Assembly: GCA_038496445.1 (NCBI GenBank)
Contig: JALMLS010000464.1
Span: forward strand, 1 to 45,407
From: Trichosphaerium sp. ATCC 40318
Lineage: Eukaryota > Protista > Tubulinea
DNA: 45,407 nt
Direction: 5' to 3'
Every line of letters starts with the position of its first letter. The stretch's first letter is position 1. The position numbers and the translations under genes were made by a program. Below the pieces are notes generated by a model, which was not told the origin of the DNA, made no database searches, and saw nothing but the letters and a program-made list of their open reading frames with translations. Positions 4,933-44,393 of this stretch are shown piece after piece.

Positions 4933-5753
4933 ATGTCGATGAATGCACGGGAAGCAGCTGTGTACCAAGCGAGTATTGCTGAACAGGTAAACGTCTTTTT
5001 AAACAGATTTACGATTATAACTCATTTTAATTTCAGTCAGAGCAGTATGAGGATATGGTAGAAGCGGTGGAAACACTTGTAGCCTTAGTAAAAGAAGATA
5101 GAAAGAAATTATCTGAAAACGAGAGAAATCTCGTTTCCGTTGCGTTTTCCAATGTTATAGCAACATTGAGGGCATCTTACCGCACAATATTTCGTTTAGA
5201 GCAGTTACGCTTTTTGTTAACCAACCCTCAATGTAATGTGGTTCTTAGGCTGGCAGATGAATCTAATGTGTATGTAGTAACAGCATACAGAAAGAAACTT
5301 GAATTTGAAATCATAGAAGCAAGCAAACGTGCTATCAAAGTATACGACACTATTCTTTCAATTAAATATCTGTACAGTCTTTACAGCGAAACTAAGTTTA
5401 TCTACACATCCATTAAAAACAAATACTATGGATATATCATTGAGGCTTCATATGGTGATGATAGAGAGGAGTATACACAACAATCTATCCAAGTATTACA
5501 AGACATTTATGATTGTATTTCAGAGTTGTATCCATGTTGTCCTCCTGTTCTTTCTTTTCTTTTGGCACAAAGCAGGAAACAATATGATCTTGGAAATAAG
5601 AATGAAGCTATTGAAATGGCACAGAAGGCTTTTGATGATGGTGTAAGTAACATTGATAGAGTAGATGAAGATACATATAAAGAAGCAACCTTAATTCTTC
5701 AATGGCTACGGGACAACATTGCTGAATGGAAAGCTGCTAATGACTTGACTTAG
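4933..5753 (+). CDS. Divergent 14-3-3-like protein
   Basis: MSMNAREAAVYQASIAEQ|SEQYEDMV (intron 4987-5036). Motifs LSENERNLVSVAF, AQKAFDDG and YKEATLILQWLRDNIAEW match the 14-3-3 family. Probable in-frame 45-nt intron near 5204-5248. Confidence 0.9.
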
Positions 5754-6443: not shown

Positions 6444-6525
6444 AAACACAATTGTTTTGAAACCAATCACATTACACCTCTTGTTACATCACAGCGTCTC
6501 TTATTACATAAATACCTTTGATCAC

Positions 6526-7685
6526 ATGCATTTTACATCTGTACTGGTGTTATTGGCCTTAATTATATCTATTTCTTGTCGCGAAATATCTCCTGGATAT
6601 ATTTATGGTGTTGCTTCACCAACAGGTCCTGAAAATGTTGAATTATTTTATACAGACTTAGAGCTTAACAATGGTAAAATTACTCTTACGACCTTGTTTC
6701 ATACTCATATATTACAGCTCCTACTCCTTTGGGCGTGACTGCTACGTTTGATACTCCAGACACACAATTTCCAATCATAAGTAAGCCAATTTTTTGATGT
6801 GCTGTTTTTACAGGCTGATGACACTTTCTAGTACCTTCATTAGATGGCTCAATGATTCTCATGTCGAAGTCAGAAACCGATGGCACACGAAAAGTAATAG
6901 TTAAATCAATTGACAACACCTTAATATGCACTGGCGAATTCCCAGAATTTGTTGTTGCTGGTCAATTTATTGATGAAACAACAATCATTGCTTTGTCTTC
7001 TACATTTACAACAGTGCAAACATACAAACTTGATATAACAAATACAAACAACTGCGTATCTAGAATATATTCATGTGCATTTAGGAACAGTTTTGGTGTT
7101 GATTTTCTCGGGTGTACGTTTGTTACCAATATTTTCGTTCTTCTTTTTTTCTTAATAGTATTGCTAACTTTTTCGCCCATAGTGGTAGTTGATGGTGAAA
7201 CTACAACATTGGCTACATCTGAACGAGCATTTACTTTAATTCGTACTATTGATACATCAGCTTTTTTTGTTCCAGGACCTTGTACTATTGAGAGTACATC
7301 GTTTAATTTTGTTACTTCTATTTATGGTACTTATGTACTAACAAAGCTTGATGATACTAGAAATATTGGTATCAAAATAGTATCACAACCACCACGAATG
7401 TCAATAGCAATTGATAAAACAACAGGCACTTATCTTCTCTTCAATCGTTTATTGTTTATTATTTTTGGGCTTACATGATTTGTAGGCACTCAAACACCTT
7501 ATGGTACATTTCCATTGACCCTTGGTTTGCCTACGTTCTATCCTGGTTTCATAGCTACATGTGTATCAAGGTTACAAAGAAAAACTATCCACTTGTGATT
7601 CCTCGCTTACCTTGTTTTTAGCAAACGATCAGTAATGGCATTGGCATCATTAACTGAAGAGAGAATAGCACTGTTAACTCGTTAA
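6526..7685 (+). CDS. Secreted protein of unknown function, copy B (signal peptide, beta-rich, Cys-containing; 6 exons)
   Basis: Signal peptide MHFTSVLVLLALIISISC. Five short introns restore one frame ending SKRSVMALASLTEERIALLTR*. Intron 7426-7485 has a GC donor. Paralogous to 31313-32485 and 43231-44393. Confidence 0.85.
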
Positions 7686-8230: not shown

Positions 8231-9443
8231 ATGTCAAAAAAACGCTTAGTAACCGTAACTCAAAGGTACATACACTAAAATAAAATTATCTGTTTCGTTT
8301 GTCTATTTTGTTGTTCTAATATCAAAAAGGAGACAACCAGGCATTCTAGAACTACCTACAGAGATATTAGCTCTAATTTTGAAGCAAACAACAAAAGCAA
8401 GATTTGCGGCTTGTCAATCTTGTCATCATTTTGCATCAATCATTCACGACATCATTGGATATGAAAGTGTTGTTATTTCGACCATCGCACAAGCAAAAGC
8501 ACTCTTAAAACATGCCAGCACTCTTAAGCAAACAAAGATCAATATTGTTAGTTACTCCTCTGATATTGTCAAAGAATTTGCTGGTGTTCATACGATAAAC
8601 CTTTTTAACTGTGATATCACTGATGACAGTATTAAAGCACTATCAGGTGTTCATACTATTACCCTTCAAAGTGATCGCATTACAGATGAGGATATCAAAG
8701 CACTTGCAGGAGTACATACAATTGCTCTTAGTTGTTGTGACAGTGTTACAGATGAAGGAATCAAAGCGCTTGCTGGTGTTCATACTATAAACCTTAGAGA
8801 ATGCTTTGAAATAACAGACGAAGGTGTTAAAGCACTGGCCGGTGTTCATACAATTAATCTTGGATGGTGTATGGGTATTACAGACGAGGGCATCAAACCA
8901 CTTGCTGGTGTTCATACTATATGCCTTAAAAGCTGTGAACTTATAACAGACGAAAGTCTCAAAGTGCTGTCAGGTGTTCATACCATAGACCTTTCTGGGT
9001 GCAAACTTATTACTGATGAGGGTATCAAGGCACTTGCTGGAGTACACAGCATTACCATGAAGGAATGTGACCATGTAACCGATGAAGGTCTCAAAGCAAT
9101 TTCAGGTGTCCACACTCTAGACCTTATGTGTTGCAATATTACAGATGAGGGTATTAGGGCAATTGCTGGCGATGTTCACACGATTAGTATTTATAGGTGT
9201 GAAGGCATCACTGATGAAGGTATTAAAATGCTTTCAGGTGTCCATTCTATTGACCTTGCATGTTGTGACAGGATTACAGATGAGGGCATCAGGGCACTTT
9301 CTGGTGTGCACACCGTTAAGCTTAAATTTATGGAAGGCATCATTGATGGCAAGGAAGCTCTTTCTGGTGTCCATTCCTTATATATTTTTAATGGCAACAT
9401 CCTTTCATCTGAGGGTATCAGGGCACTTTCTGGGCGTTTTTAG
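8231..9443 (+). CDS. F-box / leucine-rich-repeat protein
   Basis: Exon 1 8231-8265, intron 8266-8329, then F-box-like GILELPTEILALILKQ...CQSCHHFASII and ~13 LRRs of consensus GVHTIxLxxCxxITDEGIKALx. Confidence 0.9.
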
Positions 9444-10845: not shown

Positions 10846-12099
10846 ATAAAACCACATCCATCACTTTCATCACATTCATTGTCTTTTTCTCTTCCCGTTG
10901 TGTTTGGTGTAAAGATTGTACCAAACAGCATTTCAACAGGTCAAACAATTTTTGCGTATAACACAATTAGCTTAGAGCAAGTGTATTGGTTTCTATTATG
11001 GACCTGGAATATTACGATGTTATCATATTCAGCAGACAAATTACAAGACCATCCGGTATATGTCTAAAGCACGTGTTGGAGTAAGTGCTGTTGGTGCTAT
11101 TGTTGGAGCTGCTGTAAGTGCTAGTATTTTTTTCCATGTAGCATTACAACAAAACCATTGGTACTAAGCATTTACTAAGCATTCCTTAGCAGTAGCACTG
11201 CAAAAAGCTACGTTGAATTAAAAAACAACTCACCACACGATCGATACGGATATTCGTACACTCGATGTTGAAAATGTGGATGCTAACCACAGACGGCATC
11301 CATAGTATCAACACCATAAGTTTCGTGACAGATGTCCAAGATCTCAGATAAAATCATGGATAAAGGTCATCTGCCACGTACTTCATGGACATGTACTTTG
11401 CCTTAGCTGCGGTCATAAACAAGTGACAAAGCGCTATATTAGCGCCTATATCTACTATTGCATCTGTTAAAGTATCAGAACCCTCATTTATCACAATGGT
11501 TATAAACTTGTGGAAAACGCTGCTATTTTGGGAATTTTTTCGGAATAAGTTATAAGGTCACCTTGTAAATAAAGGTAATGCTTATGACTACCAGTAGAAG
11601 CCCTTAATAACGTCTACTAACACTTAAAGACAATTCATGCACGCTGTACCAACCTACAAACTAGCGAGAGCCAGTATGACTGAAAAAAAAAAAAGTGGAT
11701 TTGCACAGAGTGTTTGTACTTTAGGCAATTTTTTCTGGCACAACAAGCAACTGAAGTGTTCTCCGTTATATGGGTAGGGATCACATTTCATGCACTTGCA
11801 TTTTGCAATTACTCAATATTGTATTGAAACCGCTGAGAGTCAGTTGAAACTCTACAACCAAATGTTGATTTTGGATGTTTTTTTTTTGGATTATTTTCAG
11901 AATAGTGTTGAAGACGTCATAACTCATAACAGTAAAACTTTATCGAGTAAAACGAACTCTGAGCACTTCCTAATAGCTTATAAATACCCTCGGATATGCT
12001 CGGATCACGCCTAGGTTGTAACTATAGCCGGTAGTGTTCCTATCATTTAAATGAATTTGGAATGGGAAAAAAAAAGTAATTACTGTTATTACAAGAACT

Positions 12100-12172
12100 G
12101 GGCGCGTGGTGTAATTGGTATCACGGTCGCTTTGCATGCGACAGGTACCGGGATCGAAGCCCGGCGTGTCCA
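12100..12172 (+). tRNA. tRNA-Ala (anticodon TGC)
   Basis: 73-nt cloverleaf: acceptor GGGCGCG/CGTGTCC with G3:U70, anticodon arm GTCGC-TTTGCAT-GCGAC, T arm CCGGG-ATCGAAG-CCCGG, discriminator A, T-runs downstream. Confidence 0.95.
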
Positions 12173-13552
12173 CTCAGCTTTTGCTTGCAGCGTTGTTTTT
12201 TAGCTTAGGAACGTTGTTGTGAACAGTTTTGGGTTTGAAGTTTTTTTTTTGAAATGAAATTTTTTAATTTTCTACACTTTTTCTGTGCTTAGTTAAACTA
12301 CCCACCATCACTCGCTATGCGCATTTAAACGCTATAGTGGCATTATATTGCTGCTATGTTACTGTTTAGTATTTTTACTTATTTAAACCACACTCTACGC
12401 TTCTAATACTCTTATTACACGCGTATAGATCGCATCTAGCATATTTGCGCAAAGTTTGAACTGTTCTACCTTTAAAAAGCTTACACGTTGTGACCAATAG
12501 TGAAAATACTATTGAAACAACACTCAAGTGTTGTTTTACAAACTTTCACTTGGAATTGTTAACGGCAGACAACCACACCTGAAATCTGCAAGTAAAACGT
12601 GAAGTAGTCACCGTTATCTCCAATTGACACTAGCACTCTAGCGGTGCACATATTACAAGGTTCAGTTATTATTACAGCACATTTTCTTGTGGCTATGCAG
12701 TAGCACTTTACTATCTAAGGTGTCGGTTCTATTGCAATGTTGATAGGGAACTGTAGTACTACTCTTTGTCTTATAAGCGGAGCTTCAGTACAATCAATGA
12801 TAGTGCATTTGGAGCACGTGTTTTACATGAGTGGTACTAGTAATATCCCCGTATTTACAAGTTTGGTACTAGCAAAGTGTGATGAAGCAACTAGCATTCA
12901 TAAGTGTGAATCAGTATAAGTACTAGCAAACTGTGGCGGTAACAACTCCCGCATTTTATTATGCATATTGGCGAGTGAGAGAAGCGTTAGTAAAGAACAA
13001 CAGGACTTATAGTAATGTCGAACTGTGCAATAATAATTGCTTACATAACCGATTTCTTATCGCCTGCAATGAGCAACACAATAATTATAAAGTATTGATT
13101 GGTAGACTAGCTTTAGATTACTTACTATGTAGAAACGCAGTCAGTGCCACCTCCATTCAGAGCGTGATGTCAACACATGAAGCACGCCATACCATCAAAA
13201 GGTAGGTACAAGGGACCATCTGGATAGAGTCCTAACTCAACATTGATAAGGATGTTAAGAAATGGTTTTGGACAGTAGCAAGGATGTAATTTTTGTCGTA
13301 TTGTCTCACCATAAAAGCGAGAAGAATATATTCGAATAAGCCAGAAATTTTTTTTCAATACTTATCTATCCGGCTAGTTTGTACAGCCCTGTACATACAT
13401 GAAAAAGTTTCCTGAGACAGCTGTGGTTGTTGTCTGGGTTTAACACAGTGTTATCACTTTTGTTTGATTGTCTAATGACTGATTTGATGTGTTGCAAAAG
13501 TGGTGTAAACACAAAAACAGTTTTTTGCTAAATGTAGTGATAAACTATTCAT

Positions 13553-14749
13553 TCATTCATATGTTGTGTGAGTACCTAACTTGTTAACAGCTTCATATGT
13601 AACACCTACACACCGGCTAACATGAATAGCATGTACACTTGAAAGCGCTTTGACACCTTCATCTGTAATACAAGTACAATGGGAAAGAGTTATGGTATGG
13701 ACACCTGAAAGTGCTTTTAGTCCTTCATCTGTAATGCCTCTACACCATTCTATAGCAATGTTGTGAACACCTGAAAGTGCTTTGAGTCCTTCATCTGTAA
13801 TTCCTCTACAGTGGGAAAGAGTTATGGTATGGACACCTGAAAGTGCTTTGAGTCCTTCATCTGTAATGCCTCTACACCATTCTATAGTAATGTTGTGAAC
13901 ACCTGAAAGTGCTTTGAGTCCTTCATCTGTAATGCTATAACAAGCATCAAGAGTAATAGTATGAACTCCAGAAAGTGCTTTGAGTCCTACGTCTGTAATG
14001 TGTCTACACTCACTGAGTTTGATGGTGTGAACATCTGAAAGTGATTGGATGCCTTTGTCTGTAATGTAGCAACCACAAACAGTTATTGTATGAACACCTG
14101 ATAGCGCTTTGATACCATCATCTGTGATGTTTTCTGAAAGGTGGATAGTATGAACACCAGCAAGTGCCTTTATGCCTTCATCTGTTATACCTTCACAGCA
14201 TCCAAGATCAATAGTATGAACTCCTGCCAGCACTTTAATACCATCATCTGTAACATTACATTCAAACAGGTCTATTGTATGAACACCAGCAAGTGCCTTT
14301 ATGCCTTCATCTGTTATACCTTTACAGCATCTAAGAGCAATTGTATGAACTCCTGCCAGCACTTTAATACTGTCATCTGTAAAACAGTCTAAAAGGTTTA
14401 TCGTATGAACACCAGCAAATTCTTTGACAATATCAGAGGAGTAACTAACAATTGTGATCTTTGTTTGCTTAAGAGTGCTGGAATGTTTTAAGAGTGCTTT
14501 TGCTTGTGCGATGGTCGAAATAACAACACTTTCATATCCGATGATGTCGTGAATGATTGATGCAAAATAATGACAAGATTGACAAGCCGCAAATCTTGAT
14601 TTTGTTGTTTGCTTCAAAATTAGAGCTAATATCTCTGTAGGGAGTTCTAGAATGTCTGGTTCTCTTCTTTTTTTGATATTAGAACAACAAAATAGACAAT
14701 TTTATTGAATATACCTTTGAGTTACGGTTACTAGGCGTTGTTTTGACAT
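13553..14749 (-). CDS. F-box / leucine-rich-repeat protein, inverted paralogue of 8231-9443
   Basis: Same exon 1/intron layout (exon 1 14749-14715, exon 2 from 14666), near-identical F-box region, and an LRR array with internal 132-nt and 129-nt period duplications. Confidence 0.9.
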
Positions 14750-15218
14750 TGTTAACTCCGGGTATGTTGTTTCGTTGGGTACCAAGTGTAATTGATGTTT
14801 AGGAACGGGAGGAATGGGAATGATATTTACACAGGGAAGAATTACAAGGACCGCCTAAACGCATTGGTATTGTGGTTCTTTTTTTTCTTTCATTAATTTG
14901 CTTTTAGGCTGGTATGCTACTTGTGAAAAGCACACTGATATCGACAGAGGCTAGTACAATATCTTAAGCCAGTAACAAGGATTAGTCAAAATAGATAGCA
15001 CAGGCGCACTTGCCTGAAAATACGGAAAATAATAAAATTTACCAATACTGGTGCAGAATACCACGTGACCAAAATATCGGTTAACCTAAAACAGGTAAAT
15101 TTCAAGAAAATCAAGGCCTTGCAAAATAAGGAGTCGTTGAGTTTTTGAAATATCACGTGGCTATGTTAAAATACCATACAAGTGTAAATGACGTAAATGA
15201 CCCTGATTTTGATTTTAG

Positions 15219-15480
15219 GATATTTGTAATTGCATCAAGACCTGACACTTGTGGCAACAGAACAGAAACAACGAACGTTGGCATGGTGCTTGGTATAACT
15301 TTTGGTGTTCTTTTATTGGTATGTAGTTATCTTGTTTTAAGCTTAGCTTGATCACTATTTTTGACTTGGCACTAGGTGATCATCGGTCTTATTGCCATCT
15401 TCTTTGTTCCAAAGTTGAGACATGCGATTGTACCATACTCATTACGTAAAAACACACTTAAAGTCACCTCTACTGAAAGT
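15219..15480 (+). pseudogene. C-terminal fragment of a single-pass membrane protein (2 exons)
   Basis: IFVIASRPDTCGNRTETTNVGMVLGITFGVLLL|VIIGLIAIFFVPKLRHAIVPY with a GT-AG intron. No convincing upstream exons. Confidence 0.4.
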
Positions 15481-16117
15481 AAATTGTTCTTTTCAATAAA
15501 CGGTAGATACCCTACTTCACTCTCACGTAGGTTGTTGAGAGGTAGTTATTAACATTGCGTTTTACACCGGTTCCTATTTTTAGCTCGTGTTAGGCTATTA
15601 GATGAAATTGTTGGATCAAATACTTTACCAATGTCCATACTTACAATTGCTTTAGGAAGGTAGTTTTCGGTTCAAGTTAACGTAAATGCAAACCACAGAA
15701 GCTTGTACAAAATTGGTGTATTTGTTAATCATACGGAGACTACAGGTCCAACAAACTCTCTACTTTACTATACTCCTTTCACTAGACAGTTACACCAGCT
15801 GAAGTGTTCGCTAGCAGAAGTTCACATTCGATTTGTACTTGTAAGCACAAACATGATCTTATCGTGCCTTTGTGGAGAGCAAGAACTACAATGCATTCAC
15901 CAAATATTTTTGTGAATATAGTCCTTTTTTCCAGCCTGTACGTTGTGGAAACGCTACATCAGTTTTAACATTTTCGTTGAAGAACAATGTGAAATCTTTG
16001 TGATATTATCCTGTAGATGTGAGGAAATCACTCATAACTGCTCTTTGTGCGTTCAATAGAGCATGTCGGGTCTTAAGAAGCATATAGTCCGTAGAATGAT
16101 GTGTTTCTGACGGAATC

Positions 16118-16231
16118 GGGATCTCCCGGCCTTGGATCCCGGTACCTGTCGCATGCAAATCGCTGCCGTCTAGGGGCGCATTTCCGTCGCTTTGCATGCG
16201 GCAGGTACCGGGATCCAAGGCCGGAGAACCA
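16118..16231. repeat. tRNA-Ala-derived palindromic element 1
   Basis: 34-bp inverted arms 16126-16159 and 16191-16224 with 1 mismatch and a 31-nt spacer. Arms match tRNA-Ala 12131-12164 except GATCGAAGC->GATCCAAGG (plus one A->G in the right arm). Confidence 0.9.
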
Positions 16232-17055
16232 AATTGCGAAAGTTGCCGCCAACCAATTTTAGAATCTCGTTGGTACTGAAACTTTATACAACAACGAACT
16301 GTTGTGACTAAAATAGTATTTTGGTGTGCCATTAGCTTAACAGCACTTTTTGAAAAAAGTAAATTTGGCAGTTTTATCACGCTGCTATTAGTAATTTGTT
16401 TTTACTATGATTTGGCGCACACACAATACATTACTCAAAGGGCGTATAAGATGTGATTTTGAGAACAGGCAGTGTTCTTGGTTGGTTCCATGAAGAAAGT
16501 GAAAAAATGCGTTTTATGGCTGAAAGCGGAGCACGAAGAGCTCTACAAAAATATTTTTGAATACTATACACTATCTGATGATATAGACAAGATAGTAGTA
16601 TAGCCATTGCAGAATTACAATCAGGTAACAAACATAGTTGTACAGCTGTATTGTTCAAAACTCGAAATTTGGCCCTTTTTAGGTGGTTTTTTTGGGTGCA
16701 GCCATACCCGCCCTTGTCAAGTGCATTTACGTATACTAACCGGGTACATAATGCAGTATATCGTGTATTCAAGTTGTGTAAGAAAAAGTAGGTGTTAAGC
16801 ATGAGCAAAAATCACTCGTTTTTTTCAAAAGTGTCTAAAAATTAAATTGACTGTTTTACCTTCTCTAAGTACAACCCATATGCTAAAATTAGTCATGATG
16901 TACACATCATTATTCCATAGCACACATGGACAAATTTGCAATTTAAAAACAGTTCTTGTCTCAAAGAAAAACTCAAACTATTAAAACTCATTTTTTCAAA
17001 CAAGTGCCATTAGCCTGATGGTCAAACATCGATTATATTGTTTTTGGTCAGAATC

Positions 17056-17168
17056 TGGATCCCCCGGCCTTGGATCCCGGTGCTATCGCATGCAAGTTGT
17101 ATGCATTTTTCTGTCATTTCAAGCACTTTGCATGCACTTGCACCCAGGATCCAAGGCCAGAGGATCCA
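17056..17168. repeat. tRNA-Ala-derived palindromic element 2 (more diverged)
   Basis: TGGATCCCCCGGCCTTGGATCCCGGTGCTATCGCATGCAA ... TTGCATGCACTTGCACCCAGGATCCAAGGCCAGAGGATCCA. Similar spacer length and the same CATTTC motif position as element 1. Confidence 0.85.
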
Positions 17169-17523
17169 AGTTGTAACTGTGAAAGTCTGAAGTTGTACAG
17201 TTTGTTGAATGAATGGTTAAAAACTCAGGGATGGTATGGGAAACTGAAATAGTAAAAAGTACAAAATTTTTTAAATTCACTGTTTCAAACACAACTTACA
17301 TAATATCAGGAATTTGATTTGTTGATGTTGCTCTACAAGAAGTGTAAAGTGTGAAAATGGGCCCAGAATTTTGCTAAAAACTGTTGCAAATTGGAATGTA
17401 AATACTGAAATATTTCACTTTTTTCTTTTTTTTCATTTCCATACCATCTCTAGGAGTATGCAACCAATTTTAGATACAAGAGGTGGAGCTACTCTTGTAT
17501 CTTTCTTTATATTTCTATCCTTT

Positions 17524-17659
17524 GTACCTGTCGCATGCAAAGCGACCGTGATACCAATTACACCACGCGCCCAGTTCTTGTAATAACAGTAATTACTTTT
17601 TTTTTCCCATTCCAAATTCATTTAAATGATAGGAACACTACCGGCTATAGTTACAACCT
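17524..17659 (-). pseudogene. Truncated tRNA-Ala copy (first 49 nt) plus 87 nt of its upstream flank
   Basis: Reverse complement of 12013-12148, apparently identical. It stops at GTAC after the variable loop; T arm and 3' acceptor strand are absent. Confidence 0.9.
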
Positions 17660-17716: not shown

Positions 17717-17993
17717 CAGTACCAATTTCAAAAATGGATTTCAACATGGAAAACATAGGATTCGATTTGAAGGCTACAAAAAAAAAAAACCAAACCTTGC
17801 CTTAAAAAAGTTGTATTGCCAATAAACTAGTAGCATGAAATACTTATAACCCTTTTAATTTTACAATAGAGAAAGACAAGCCAAAAAGACAATCCTACTT
17901 AATTTATATTGATTTCAGGAAAATCACATCAACACGAATTCATAAAAAAATCATATTGAATTCCTAAAAAATCCGTTTTTGAAATTGGTACTG
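17717..17993. mobile_element. MITE-like element, 25-bp TIRs, 3-bp CAA target-site duplication
   Basis: CAGTACCAATTTCAAAAATGGATTT ... AAATCCGTTTTTGAAATTGGTACTG (24/25 match). CAA on both sides (17714-17716, 17994-17996). AT-rich non-coding interior. Confidence 0.8.
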
Positions 17994-31312: not shown

Positions 31313-32485
31313 TTAACGATGTAGCAGTGCTATGCGTTCTTCATTTAATGACGCCACTGACTTTGCTGACCGTTTACTAAACAAGTTAAATGAGTATCGA
31401 AGATGAATCTTTTTAAAGTCACCTTGATACACACGGAGCTATTAAACCTGGGTAGAATGTTGGAATAGTGATGCTTGGTGATTGAATTGTTCTATATGGT
31501 GTTTGAGTGCCTACAATTCTTGTAAGCCAAATATAATAACCAATATATGATTGAAGAGAACATAAGTACCTGTTGTTTTATCAATTGCTATTGACACTCG
31601 TGGGGTGGCGGTATTAACGTCGATACCAATATTTCTGGTATCATCAAGCCTTGTTAACAAGAAAATACCCCCAACAGTACCTAAAGTATTGACAGATGCC
31701 ATGTCAATAACACATGCTCCTGGAACAAAAAAAGCTGGTGTATCAATAGTATAAAGCACAGTGTCTCCAGAGCTTTGAAAAACAGCCACCATTGTTGTTT
31801 CGCTATCAACTACCACTGTAACCGAAAAAGTAAGCCATATTAAGCGAGAAAAAAAGCAGAAAAAAGAACAAATTGTTGTTCGCCAACGTACTTCCAACAA
31901 ATCCAGGAGGTCTTATTGGTGTTCCGCATGAGTATATTGAAGATACACAGTTATCCGTATTTGTTATGTCAAGTTTATATGTTGCCACTGTGAATGTCGA
32001 GCTAAACCAAACAATGAATGTTGTATCATCAATAAATTGACCGGCAGCAACAAACTCTGGGAATTCGCCAGTACATATTAATGTGTTGTCAATTGATTTA
32101 ACTATTACTTTAAATCCACTGGCATCTATCATTGTCAAAAGAATCATCGAGCCATCAAATGAAGGTACTAAAAAAGTGTCATCAGCCTGTAAAAACAGCA
32201 TATTTGGTATAAACAACTTTGGCTTACTTATGACTGGAAATTGTTCTATTTGAAGCGTAAACGTAGCAGTGACGCCCAGAGAAGTAGGTTCTGCAAATGG
32301 TTAAGTACGAAACAAAGGTGTAAAGGTATTTTACCATTATTAAACTCTAAGTCTGTATAAAATACTTCAACATTTTCAGGATCAGTTAGTGATGAAGCCA
32401 CACCATAAACATATCCAGGAGGTATTTGGCGACAAGAAATAGCTATAATTAAGGCCAATAACCCCAATATGGACGTAAAATGCAT
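31313..32485 (-). CDS. Secreted protein of unknown function, copy C
   Basis: MHFTSILGLLALIIAISC. Same six-exon structure as copy B, all GT-AG, intact frame ending ERIALLHR*. Confidence 0.85.
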
Positions 32486-33022
32486 GTGATCAAAGGTATT
32501 TATTTAATAAGAGACGCTGCGATGTAACAAGAGATGTGTGATGTGATTGGCCTTCAAAACAATTGTTTGCTTAAGTGAACAAAACGCACTTGATTTCACG
32601 AAGCAGATTCATCGCAAAAAACAAAAAGTCATGGCGTAATATTTGCGCCAATTTTATATAGTGATAAGTTAGATGTCACAGCATACTTATAGTTTAAATT
32701 TTGTCCAATGAAATCTCGTGTTTGGTTAAAAACCACGAACTGACAAGAATGATCCGGCTACACAGATCGAACTGTAACGAGAGGATTCGAGATACCTATT
32801 CAATGAATGTATCAGAGGTATCACGTGCTCCGAGACACCGTGTCTATATCGTTATCTAGCGATTGCGAATTGTAAAAATACAACGTCAATAGTGTTTGGG
32901 TTTTCCTATTGTTTTCACGACTACTTCTTGATGCAGATGAAAGAAAACGAATTTCAATTGAAAAAACAGTAATGTTTATGACTCAACTCTCGTATTACAC
33001 AGTCCACTACAGTTTTATACAA

Positions 33023-37836: not shown

Positions 37837-38201
37837 TAGCGCCCTTCCGTTATGAATGAATAATTTGAATATTCAAATACAACCTACATTCACAAATATT
37901 CACGACTAAAAAAATTCATTCATTATTCATGCACACAGTAAACGGCAGAAAATTGTGCAATTTGATGGCTGATTTTGACTGGATTTGTGGGTTTTGGTGT
38001 TCTGTTGACTATTCCGATTCGGTTTTCAAATGCAACTTGTTGAATCTATCCATTAGGAACATTGCTAAGTGCTACAAACCAAAGCTCCTCCACATACTGA
38101 CTCACCAAACGCCCATGAATATTCATGAATGAATATTAATGAATATGGCTTACGGGACAATGAATATGAATATTGCTTGTATTCATAACGGAAGGGCGTT
38201 A
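37837..38201. mobile_element. hAT-type MITE (365 bp, 21-bp TIRs, 8-bp TSD)
   Basis: TIRs TAGCGCCCTTCCGTTATGAAT / ATTCATAACGGAAGGGCGTTA (20/21). TSD ATCTATCC at 37829-37836 and 38202-38209. Clustered subterminal TGAAT/ATTCA motifs. Confidence 0.9.
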
Positions 38202-42446: not shown

Positions 42447-43230
42447 GAGTAGTGTATGGCTGTTGCTATACAAAAAAAGAGTGTTTCCAGTAAAGGCTAT
42501 TGTCAACGTAGTTCTGTGGTATTAAAGACTAAAGATACAAGCATTCATTCGGCCTCAAGATCCACCAGACTCATGTGCCAGGTTGTAGAGTCACCTTGAT
42601 ACGTTAGATTGGACATAGTCAACACAAAGAAGGTGCATATTGGAGAGTCTTGATGGCTCTATCATCCATGAGGGGATTTATTACACTTAAAAAGAATCGT
42701 GTAGCAAATGATAATTGAATAACAAAACAAGAAAGCATGATCACTACTTGTAATTGTTTTGTAAAAGCTTGAAATATTCCACATTTCATATGAATACAAT
42801 TACAGACTTCAATTGGTTAGAAATAACTGAGAGTGTTACGGATATATTGCGGTTGTGATGGTCCAGCTGTTTCTGAAGCTGCAATTTTGACAATTATAAA
42901 AGGCGTACATTTCGTCACATGATCTCCGCACATGACTGAGGTGCGGAGTTATCATTATTTTTTGCACTACAAAGCTACTTACGCTTCAAATGGAGCAAGA
43001 AGGACGAGTGTGAGATGGAAAAGAGTTCGTGGATAACCGTGATTGTAGTATTTTACTACAAACTAATCAACATAATAAACTACAAAAGAAGGCCAAGACA
43101 GGATTGACACAATGAATATAATGCCATAATGTTTGTTCATGATGATCTGCTTCCGTGATATCAAGTGCCTTTTATCACTTAAGCCAAAAACTATTGGTAC
43201 ACTAAACATCACAACGTCTCTTGAGATCAC

Positions 43231-44393
43231 ATGCATTTTACATCCATACTGGCGTTATTGGCCTTAATTATATCTATTTCTTGTCGCCAAATCTCTCCTG
43301 GGTATATTTATGGTGTGGCTTCATCACTAACTGGCCCTGAAAATGTTGAAGTATTTTATACAGACTTAGAGTTTAATAATGGTAAAATACCTTTACACCT
43401 TGTTTCGTACTTAACTATTTGCAGAACCTACTTCTCTCTGGGCGTCACTGCTACGTTTACGCTTCAATCAGAACAATTTCCAGCCATAAGTAAGCCAAAG
43501 TTGTAAAACCAATTATGCTGTTTTACAGGCTGATGATACTTTTTTAGTACCTTCATTTGATGGCTCGATGATTCTTTTGACAATGACAGAAACTAGTGGA
43601 AGATTTAAAGTAATAGTTAAATCAATTGACAACACATTAATATGTACTGGCGAATTCCCAGAGTTTGCTATTGCCGGTCAATTTATTGATGATACAACAT
43701 TCATTGTTTTACTTCCTCCGTCATCCACAGTGGCAACATATAAACTTGACATAACAAATACGAATAATTGTGTATCTCCAATATACTCGTGCGTAATATC
43801 ACCAGTAAGACCTTCTGGTTTTATTGGAAGTACGTTGATAACCATCAATTTTTTCTTCTTTTTTTCTTGCTTAATATGACTTACTGTTTCTGTTACAGTG
43901 GTAGTTGATAGCGAAACAACAATGTTGTCTGTTGCTCAAAGATTTGGGAGTTCTGAAATTCATTCTGTTGATACATCAGCTTTTTTTGTTCCAGGAGCAT
44001 GTGTTATTGATTCGATTGATACTTTGGGTTCTCCAATTGTGGGTACTATCTTGCTGTTAAGGCTTGATGATACAAATGTTGGTATCAACAGTTTTGCTGA
44101 AACCCCACGAATGTCAATAGCAATTGATAAAACAACAGGCACTTATGTTCTCTTCAATCATTTATTGTTTATTATATTTGGCTTACAAGAATTGTAGGCA
44201 CTCAAACACCATATAGAACAGTTCAATCATCAAGCATCACTCTCCAACATTCTACCCAGGTTTCATAGCTCCGTGTGTATCAAGGTGAATTGAAAGAAAG
44301 AAAGAATACTCACTTACCAGTGTTTTTAGTAAACGGTCAGCAAAGGCAGTGGCGTCATTAAATGAGGAACGAATAGCACTGCTACATCGTTAA
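43231..44393 (+). CDS. Secreted protein of unknown function, copy D (extra CT in exon 2; may need intron-1 retention or be a pseudogene)
   Basis: Closest to copy C. GC donor at intron 44139-44197. Ends ERIALLHR*. Confidence 0.75.

Follow-up and report, generated by a model that had tools for sequence, protein, structure and literature searches.

The stretch of DNA analysed here (45,407 nucleotides of a Trichosphaerium sp. contig, hereafter ‘the window’) is AT-rich eukaryotic sequence of 35-42% GC, in which open reading frames are sparse and encode a 14-3-3 protein, F-box/LRR proteins and MORN-repeat proteins. The 14-3-3 reading frame (5055-5753, forward strand) is intronless and matches its Pfam family at E=5e-33; no relatives at E<=1e-20, nor the protein itself, were found in a collection of 5.8 billion proteins, and the protein is an unusually divergent member of its family. 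Two F-box-LRR genes form an inverted pair (8324-8612 and 14384-14672) whose 5' parts are 96% identical and whose 66-nt (22-aa) LRR modules have been reshuffled; the large reading frame at 13553-14617 is an F-box-LRR paralogue. Between the members of this pair sits an intact tRNA-Ala(UGC) gene, the sole tRNA gene found in the window by ARAGORN and Rfam. A coding-looking segment of ~1 kb occurs three times (6474-7572, 31421-32537 and 43225-44286), with copies 80-96% identical and in mixed orientation, and has no Pfam match; the three segments apparently make up a local multigene family. Just upstream of an F-box gene, two inverted repeats of 21 nt (37837-37857 and 38181-38201), 95% complementary and 323 nt apart, form a candidate MITE. 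A domain scan of 26 reading frames between 10 and 30 kb, among them three short ones in the 12.2-16.2 kb interval (12933-13202, 15145-15348 and 15703-15912), returned only Actin, MORN and DUF7845, and detected no recombinase, transposase or reverse-transcriptase domain.

Downstream of the F-box-LRR pair (8.3-14.7 kb), at least 3 kb are devoid of convincing coding sequence, and it is here that a sequence-only reading of the window had described two homologous foldbacks. Both are real features of the sequence: no short-range inverted repeat in the window ranks above the two elements, E1 and E2 (Table 1). The core arms of E1 (16126-16162 and 16188-16224) are 37 nt long and 95% complementary across a gap of 25 nt, within a weaker palindrome that reaches 16111-16238 and brings self-complementarity to 76.5% over 132 nt. 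Those of E2 (17047-17080 and 17144-17177) are 34 nt long and 79% complementary across a gap of 63 nt, with self-complementarity of 68% over 132 nt. As single-stranded DNA, E1 is predicted to fold at -53.2 kcal/mol (z-score -9.45 against shuffles) and E2 at -33.7 kcal/mol (z-score -6.64). Arms of ~55-65 nt flank a spacer of 21-33 nt and make up most of the unit, as they do in foldback elements. The CATTTC motif noticed earlier in both spacers is indeed in register, at a distance of 936 nt, and all six GGATCC sites of the window fall inside the two elements. The GGGCGC of the E1 spacer is also the sequence of the opening 6 nt of the tRNA acceptor stem, which may be coincidence. Searches of the 45-kb window returned these two copies only; a 19-nt similarity to the inner right arm of E2 at 11782-11800 was considered as a third relic and dismissed as not significant (E=0.35).

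Table 1. Features of the foldback elements and of the tRNA-Ala sequences in their neighbourhood; positions are those of the window.
Feature	Position	Strand	Remarks
Intact tRNA-Ala(UGC) gene	12100-12173	+	Anticodon TGC; G3:U70; reference for the arms
E1, full homologous unit (foldback)	16102-16248		GC 59%; surroundings 30-37% GC
E1 left arm	16118-16164	-	tRNA-Ala-like positions ~29-73; trailer on to ~16102
E1 spacer	16165-16185		Contains GGGCGC, and CATTTC at 16179
E1 right arm	16186-16233	+	tRNA-Ala-like positions 27-73; trailer on to ~16248
E2, full homologous unit (more decayed foldback)	17040-17186		GC 48%
E2 left arm	17055-17100	-	tRNA-Ala-like positions ~32-73
E2 right arm	17122-17168	+	tRNA-Ala-like positions ~27-73; CATTTC just inside, at 17115
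Invariant 8-nt box TTGCATGC (anticodon loop)	16192-16199	+	Same in all four arms
Mirror copies of TTGCATGC	16151-16158; 17088-17095; 17128-17135	-; -; +	
Invariant 12-nt box GGATCCAAGGCC (altered T loop / B box)	16211-16222	+	Same in all four arms
Mirror copies of GGATCCAAGGCC	16128-16139; 17066-17077; 17147-17158	-; -; +	
136-nt inverted copy of 12013-12148	17524-17659	-	100% identical

The arms are made from the 3' part of a tRNA-Ala gene. A profile of the four arms run against the window matches the tRNA-Ala gene at E=3.9e-9, and the gene used as query recovers the right and left arms of E1 (E1R, 8e-7; E1L, 2e-5) and, with much poorer E-values, those of E2 (E2L, 0.025; E2R, 0.23). All four match tRNA-Ala(UGC) from position ~29 to the TCCA end, and over the 25 nt of tRNA positions 32-56 E1L is identical to the gene while E1R differs by one A-to-G, at a degenerate position of the pattern. 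They are not tRNAs in their own right: neither ARAGORN nor Rfam, even in a permissive search, accepts any arm as a tRNA gene, which bears out the earlier description of the arms as 3' parts and disposes of a separate intact isotype. Nor is the gene at 12100-12173 their direct source, since it is unlike them in T loop, 3' acceptor strand and trailer. Where the gene has GGATCGAAGCCC, every arm has GGATCCAAGGCC, which changes the B box at positions 57 and 61; this shared change, also seen in the first reading, is confirmed by the four occurrences of the box in the window, one per arm and none elsewhere (0.08 expected). Past the T stem, the sequence is roughly RGGATCCA in the arms and CGTGTCCA in the gene, and the ~20 nt of trailer that the arms have in common (GATTCYG...) are unrelated to the gene's own. 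Because the arms continue for ~20 homologous nt past TCCA, and not into CCA, the template was a gene with its flank rather than a mature tRNA. The arms, then, derive from a tRNA-Ala(UGC)-type gene and its 3' flank, different from the present local gene.

This origin separates the elements from the better-known debris of tRNA genes. Like tRNA SINEs and retropseudogenes, including the 3'-truncated ‘tailless’ kind (PMC5322556), they are tRNA-derived dispersed fragments cut at single-stranded regions of the tRNA. SINEs and retropseudogenes, however, keep the 5' part with its A and B boxes and are single-headed, whereas the arms of E1 and E2 have no 5' part, are arranged as palindromes and carry a genomic 3' flank in place of CCA or a tail. 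A tRNA-derived SINE was accordingly rejected, because the arms start at ~27-29, beyond the A-box region (8-19), which they therefore lack, and their B box carries changes. A permuted or split tRNA gene was likewise discarded, as no 3' half is found upstream of a 5' part in the same orientation and the acceptor strands fail to pair. Treating E1 and E2 as the direct terminal repeats of a TRIM or LTR element also failed, since reading through the sequence revealed no primer-binding site complementary to the 3' end of tRNA-Ala, no polypurine tract and no TG..CA ends.

Conservation among the four arms is unevenly distributed. The unit follows a pattern of GGCCTTGGATCC, ~12 nt, GCATGCAA, ~32 nt, TTGCATGC, ~12 nt and GGATCCAAGGCC, and its invariant columns fall into one run of 12 and one of 8, a clustering to which permutation gives P=8e-5 overall and 0.004 when the tRNA-like part is taken alone. 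Such clustering may reflect constraint, for example at putative binding sites, rather than neutral relics, and may equally be the product of one complex mutation in the E2 variable loop combined with the near-identity of the E1 arms. Between the mirrored TTGCATGC boxes there are 33 nt in E1 and 32 nt in E2, where a palindrome built on the dyad of the D arm (index 17.5) should have 30 nt; provided that indels have not changed the net length of the spacer, the symmetry centre projects to the D loop at index ~16.5-17. As the spacers no longer resemble a D arm, this spacing backs a snap-back at the D-arm hairpin just mildly. Towards the outside symmetry fades, the outer ends being the least conserved part of E1 and E2 and the palindrome strongest internally.

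Comparison of the two elements separates an early copying event from later changes within each copy. E1 and E2 share 72% identity over 138 nt in the same orientation and 66% in the opposite one, and neither blastn nor nhmmer finds homology between their flanks; the unit of copying was therefore the ~145-bp element itself and not a larger segment, and a larger tandem duplication was rejected on the same grounds. Among the informative four-arm site patterns, six are side-specific (left agrees with left and right with right), three are within-element and one is crosswise, with the side-specific sites mostly in the outer parts of the arms. Together with the same-orientation identity, these six sites imply that the palindrome was already asymmetric before it was duplicated, and that it was copied whole. 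The inner arms have a different history. In a hand alignment of positions 27-65, both arms of E2 share G30A, C43T, the loss of one G at 45/46 and T47C, a concerted change larger than the one first claimed, for which ~0.45 such coincidences would be expected by chance (an estimate); these four derived states indicate homogenisation from arm to arm. E1 is a similar mosaic, in which the inner 37 nt match at 95% and the outer ~19-25 nt, compared by hand, at ~50%. The outer arms thus appear to keep a left/right difference that predates the split of E1 and E2, and the inner parts to have been homogenised separately in each element, so that the earlier statement that symmetry is maintained stands for the inner arms, which change in concert, and falls for the outer ~25 nt, which are side-specific. 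Of the two, E2 has drifted further (48% GC against 59%), and at least six of its changes affect one arm and break pairing.

E1 and E2 are not the only tRNA-Ala debris in the region. The perfect inverted copy listed in Table 1 lies ~350-355 nt past E2 and comprises 87 nt of upstream flank followed by tRNA positions 1-49, cut in the variable loop after GGTAC; a tRNA retro-copy would not bring such a flank with it. An interval of 1.5 kb therefore holds three tRNA-Ala-derived pieces, at a distance of 4-5.5 kb from the tRNA-Ala gene, and the 136-nt copy and its source bracket a segment of 5.4 kb. Its complete identity points to recent short-patch copying, on a nucleosome-sized scale, of the tRNA locus in this region; the pair could be a driver of inversion, a recent repair patch or an assembly problem.

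The interval from 16.1 to 18.0 kb is a cluster of inverted-repeat DNA. Two further inverted-repeat pairs adjoining E2 and the truncated tRNA copy, 17717-17741 / 17969-17993 (25 nt at 96%) and 17227-17258 / 17420-17451 (32 nt at 72%), are candidate small TIR elements. A hairpin at 17474-17504, with a perfect 11-bp stem (AGATACAAGAG, a 9-nt loop and CTCTTGTATCT), is separated by 20 nt from the point at which the truncated copy breaks off, and supplies a false T arm to a 25-bit Rfam tRNA match; that sub-threshold match (17471-17572, reverse strand) was rejected as the truncated 5' part joined to an unrelated hairpin, with an unpaired acceptor stem. An exact 14-nt direct repeat, CAACCAATTTTAGA, is found just right of E1 (16250-16263) and again at 17461-17474, 50 nt left of the truncated tRNA copy, where ~0.01 such repeats would be expected by chance in 2.3 kb (an estimate).

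Genes for tRNAs are sites of replication-fork pausing and fragility, and the explanation of E1 and E2 that we tentatively prefer, without giving it an even chance, is a fold-back inverted duplication at a copy of the tRNA-Ala gene, followed by local unit-wise copying, arm-to-arm conversion and decay. It formed no part of the sequence-only reading, and fits the anatomy at least as well as the origins proposed there. The sequence of events would have begun with a break or a stalled replication fork in the D-arm region of a tRNA-Ala(UGC) gene copy, where a nascent or resected 3' end would have snapped back and copied its own strand. The 5' third of the gene would thereby have been replaced by an inverted copy of positions ~29-73 with ~20 nt of 3' flank, leaving two outward-facing 3' parts and a dead gene without its A box. 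The ~145-bp unit would then have been copied whole, in the same orientation, to a site 936 bp away, presumably as a short templated repair patch like the one that may have given rise to the perfect 136-nt copy of the tRNA locus. Later, gene conversion between the two arms of each element would have partly homogenised their inner portions, with the outer parts and the spacer drifting towards AT, and the remains would probably have no present function.

Precedents for the first step come from yeast, where hairpins of single-stranded DNA have mediated foldback inversions and where foldback priming at double-strand breaks has been proposed as a route to inverted duplications (PMC7467729, PMC10622511). 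Such foldback inversions and quasi-palindromes are, like E1 and E2, inverted duplications whose arms are separated by a spacer; they form round a short natural hairpin, as E1 and E2 may have done, and need no element-encoded enzyme for their origin. They differ in scale, the yeast events studied being rearrangements of chromosome scale and ours a local palindrome of ~145 bp that was later duplicated as a unit (PMC7467729, PMC10622511). That the hairpin in our case was the tRNA D arm is something we infer. The degenerate outer ends, the opposite of what a cut-and-paste terminal inverted repeat should look like, count in favour of a fold-back scar. So do the template of gene plus flank, the position of the symmetry centre, the unrelated flanks without target-site duplications above chance, the crowding of tRNA-Ala pieces near the gene with a recent 136-nt patch among them, the lack of further copies in the 45-kb window and of transposase or recombinase domains in the 26 reading frames scanned between 10 and 30 kb, and the decay of E2. 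Against it, the spacers keep no convincing D-arm sequence, arms of 45-65 nt are long for a simple template switch, and the invariant columns cluster in two boxes that could be constrained, putative binding sites. The differences from the local gene in the T loop and acceptor strand, found in all four arms, also count against it.

If those boxes are indeed bound by a protein, E1 and E2 might instead be members of a dispersed, non-autonomous family of foldback or MITE-like elements with tRNA-Ala-derived arms, in which the symmetric TTGCATGC and GGATCCAAGGCC would be putative sites for a transposase or recombinase encoded elsewhere. We regard this as the main rival and a serious possibility, if an unlikely one. 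The elements have much of the outward form: like foldback elements and MITEs they are small and non-coding, with inverted arms that take up ~80% of the unit and a strong potential to form hairpins, and there are at least two of these discrete units in unrelated flanks. The clustering of the invariant boxes beyond chance, the confinement of the window's GGATCC sites to the elements and the presence of other short inverted-repeat elements in the same 2-kb interval all speak for such a family. In contrast to foldback elements and MITEs, the arms of E1 and E2 consist of the 3' part and flank of a tRNA gene, their termini are less conserved than the internal boxes and a linked transposase was not found. 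The conserved terminal inverted repeats expected of a MITE are missing, the outer ~25 nt being specific to one side or the other. A systematic scan of boundaries detected no target-site duplications above chance: the best candidates were a 6-mer for E1 and, for E2, an 8/9-mer with one mismatch at non-homologous boundaries, where about 0.5-0.9 such matches are expected by chance over the boundary pairs scanned (an estimate). That both copies in 45 kb lie near a tRNA-Ala gene and a third tRNA-Ala fragment also sits poorly with dispersal, and the proposal of a MITE-like family made in the sequence-only reading is correspondingly weakened.

Searches further afield were no kinder to this family, returning chance or satellite matches only. 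Scans of viral collections gave no matches and a scan of prokaryote genomes gave five, none of them in a tRNA, with about 7.6 expected by chance (an estimate). Four metagenome matches to the mirrored 12-nt boxes were rejected as unrelated, all being GGCCTTGGATCC-type tandem satellites without a tRNA part; the marine metagenome contigs concerned (L001-L004) are tandem satellites on GGCCTTGGATCCAA-type units, which matched solely through having the 12-nt box in both orientations. No description of a tRNA-derived foldback or MITE was found in the open-access literature searched as full text. The bolder form of the idea, a genome-wide family of tRNA-Ala-derived foldbacks in which a recombinase or transposase aimed at the tRNA-Ala genes themselves would recognise TTGCATGC and GGATCCAAGGCC, is in our judgement improbable. 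If true, a family recognised through its boxes would tie the palindromes and the truncated 5' copy of tRNA-Ala together, and would amount to a mobile element of eukaryotes that imitates the very tRNA target it breaks. Were the family dispersed and its boxes bound by protein, it would be, to our knowledge, the first foldback transposon built from the 3' part of a tRNA.

A targeting enzyme is also central to the quite improbable reading of the tRNA-Ala pieces as att-type sites, or their scars, left by an element of the tyrosine-recombinase type with tRNA-Ala genes as its integration targets. Its two junctions would survive as the truncated 5' part and as an arm of E1 or E2. Extra copies of tRNA sequence from the anticodon to the 3' end, near an intact tRNA gene, are just what the attL and attR sites of prophages and genomic islands provide. 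The overlap between the truncated copy (tRNA 1-49) and E1L (~29-73) forms a 21-nt direct repeat with one mismatch, and the intact tRNA shares its 3' part with E1R and E2R as a direct repeat at a distance of 4-5 kb. This geometry is automatic, however, because E1 contains both orientations, so that any nearby tRNA-Ala fragment is a direct repeat of one arm or the other. Whereas att duplicates are single direct repeats flanking an integrase-bearing element, E1 and E2 hold inverted pairs that are old relative to the intact gene. The direct repeats are thus present and the recombinase-encoding element that they should bracket is not: the 10-30 kb domain scan, with its three reading frames in the 12.2-16.2 kb interval, returned neither an integrase nor any other recombinase, and the suggestion of recombination sites for a tRNA-targeting element loses ground with it. 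The 3' parts, moreover, are not complementary to the 5' acceptor strand. Their T loops have changed, whereas the 5' copy still matches the live gene at 100%, so the ages of the would-be junctions disagree; and the trailers of the arms show homology among themselves and not with different host flanks.

The strength of the predicted hairpins invites a further reading, very unlikely in our view, in which the foldbacks would be transcribed hairpin-RNA genes (a pre-miRNA or a source of siRNA) yielding small RNAs antisense to tRNA-Ala or its fragments. As RNA the elements are predicted to fold at -91.7 and -73.9 kcal/mol, with z-scores of about -9, one arm of E1 holds a perfect 25-nt match to the tRNA, and the double changes shared by the arms of E2 keep them paired. 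Set against this, the A box is absent and the B box altered, and Rfam offers generic, sub-threshold hairpin matches only (44.6 bits against a gathering score of 100). The strand that folds better is not the same in E1 and E2, at least six one-arm changes in E2 are left unpaired, and a DNA palindrome under gene conversion leaves the same signature of paired change. An assembly artefact, whether foldback chimera or mis-join, is scarcely credible: the neighbouring 136-nt inverted copy is 100% identical, as can occur in mis-assemblies, but artefactual foldbacks are long and perfect, and E1 and E2 are imperfect, asymmetric, mutually diverged (72%) and set in unique flanks.

What the elements mean for the genome that carries them depends on how they arose. 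If they are local scars, as fold-back duplication at a tRNA-Ala gene copy would make them, they would not be surprising, and would nonetheless offer a clean natural case of a tRNA gene turned into a quasi-palindrome whose arms were then homogenised with one another, and a useful one for viewing tRNA genes as fragile sites in protist genomes.
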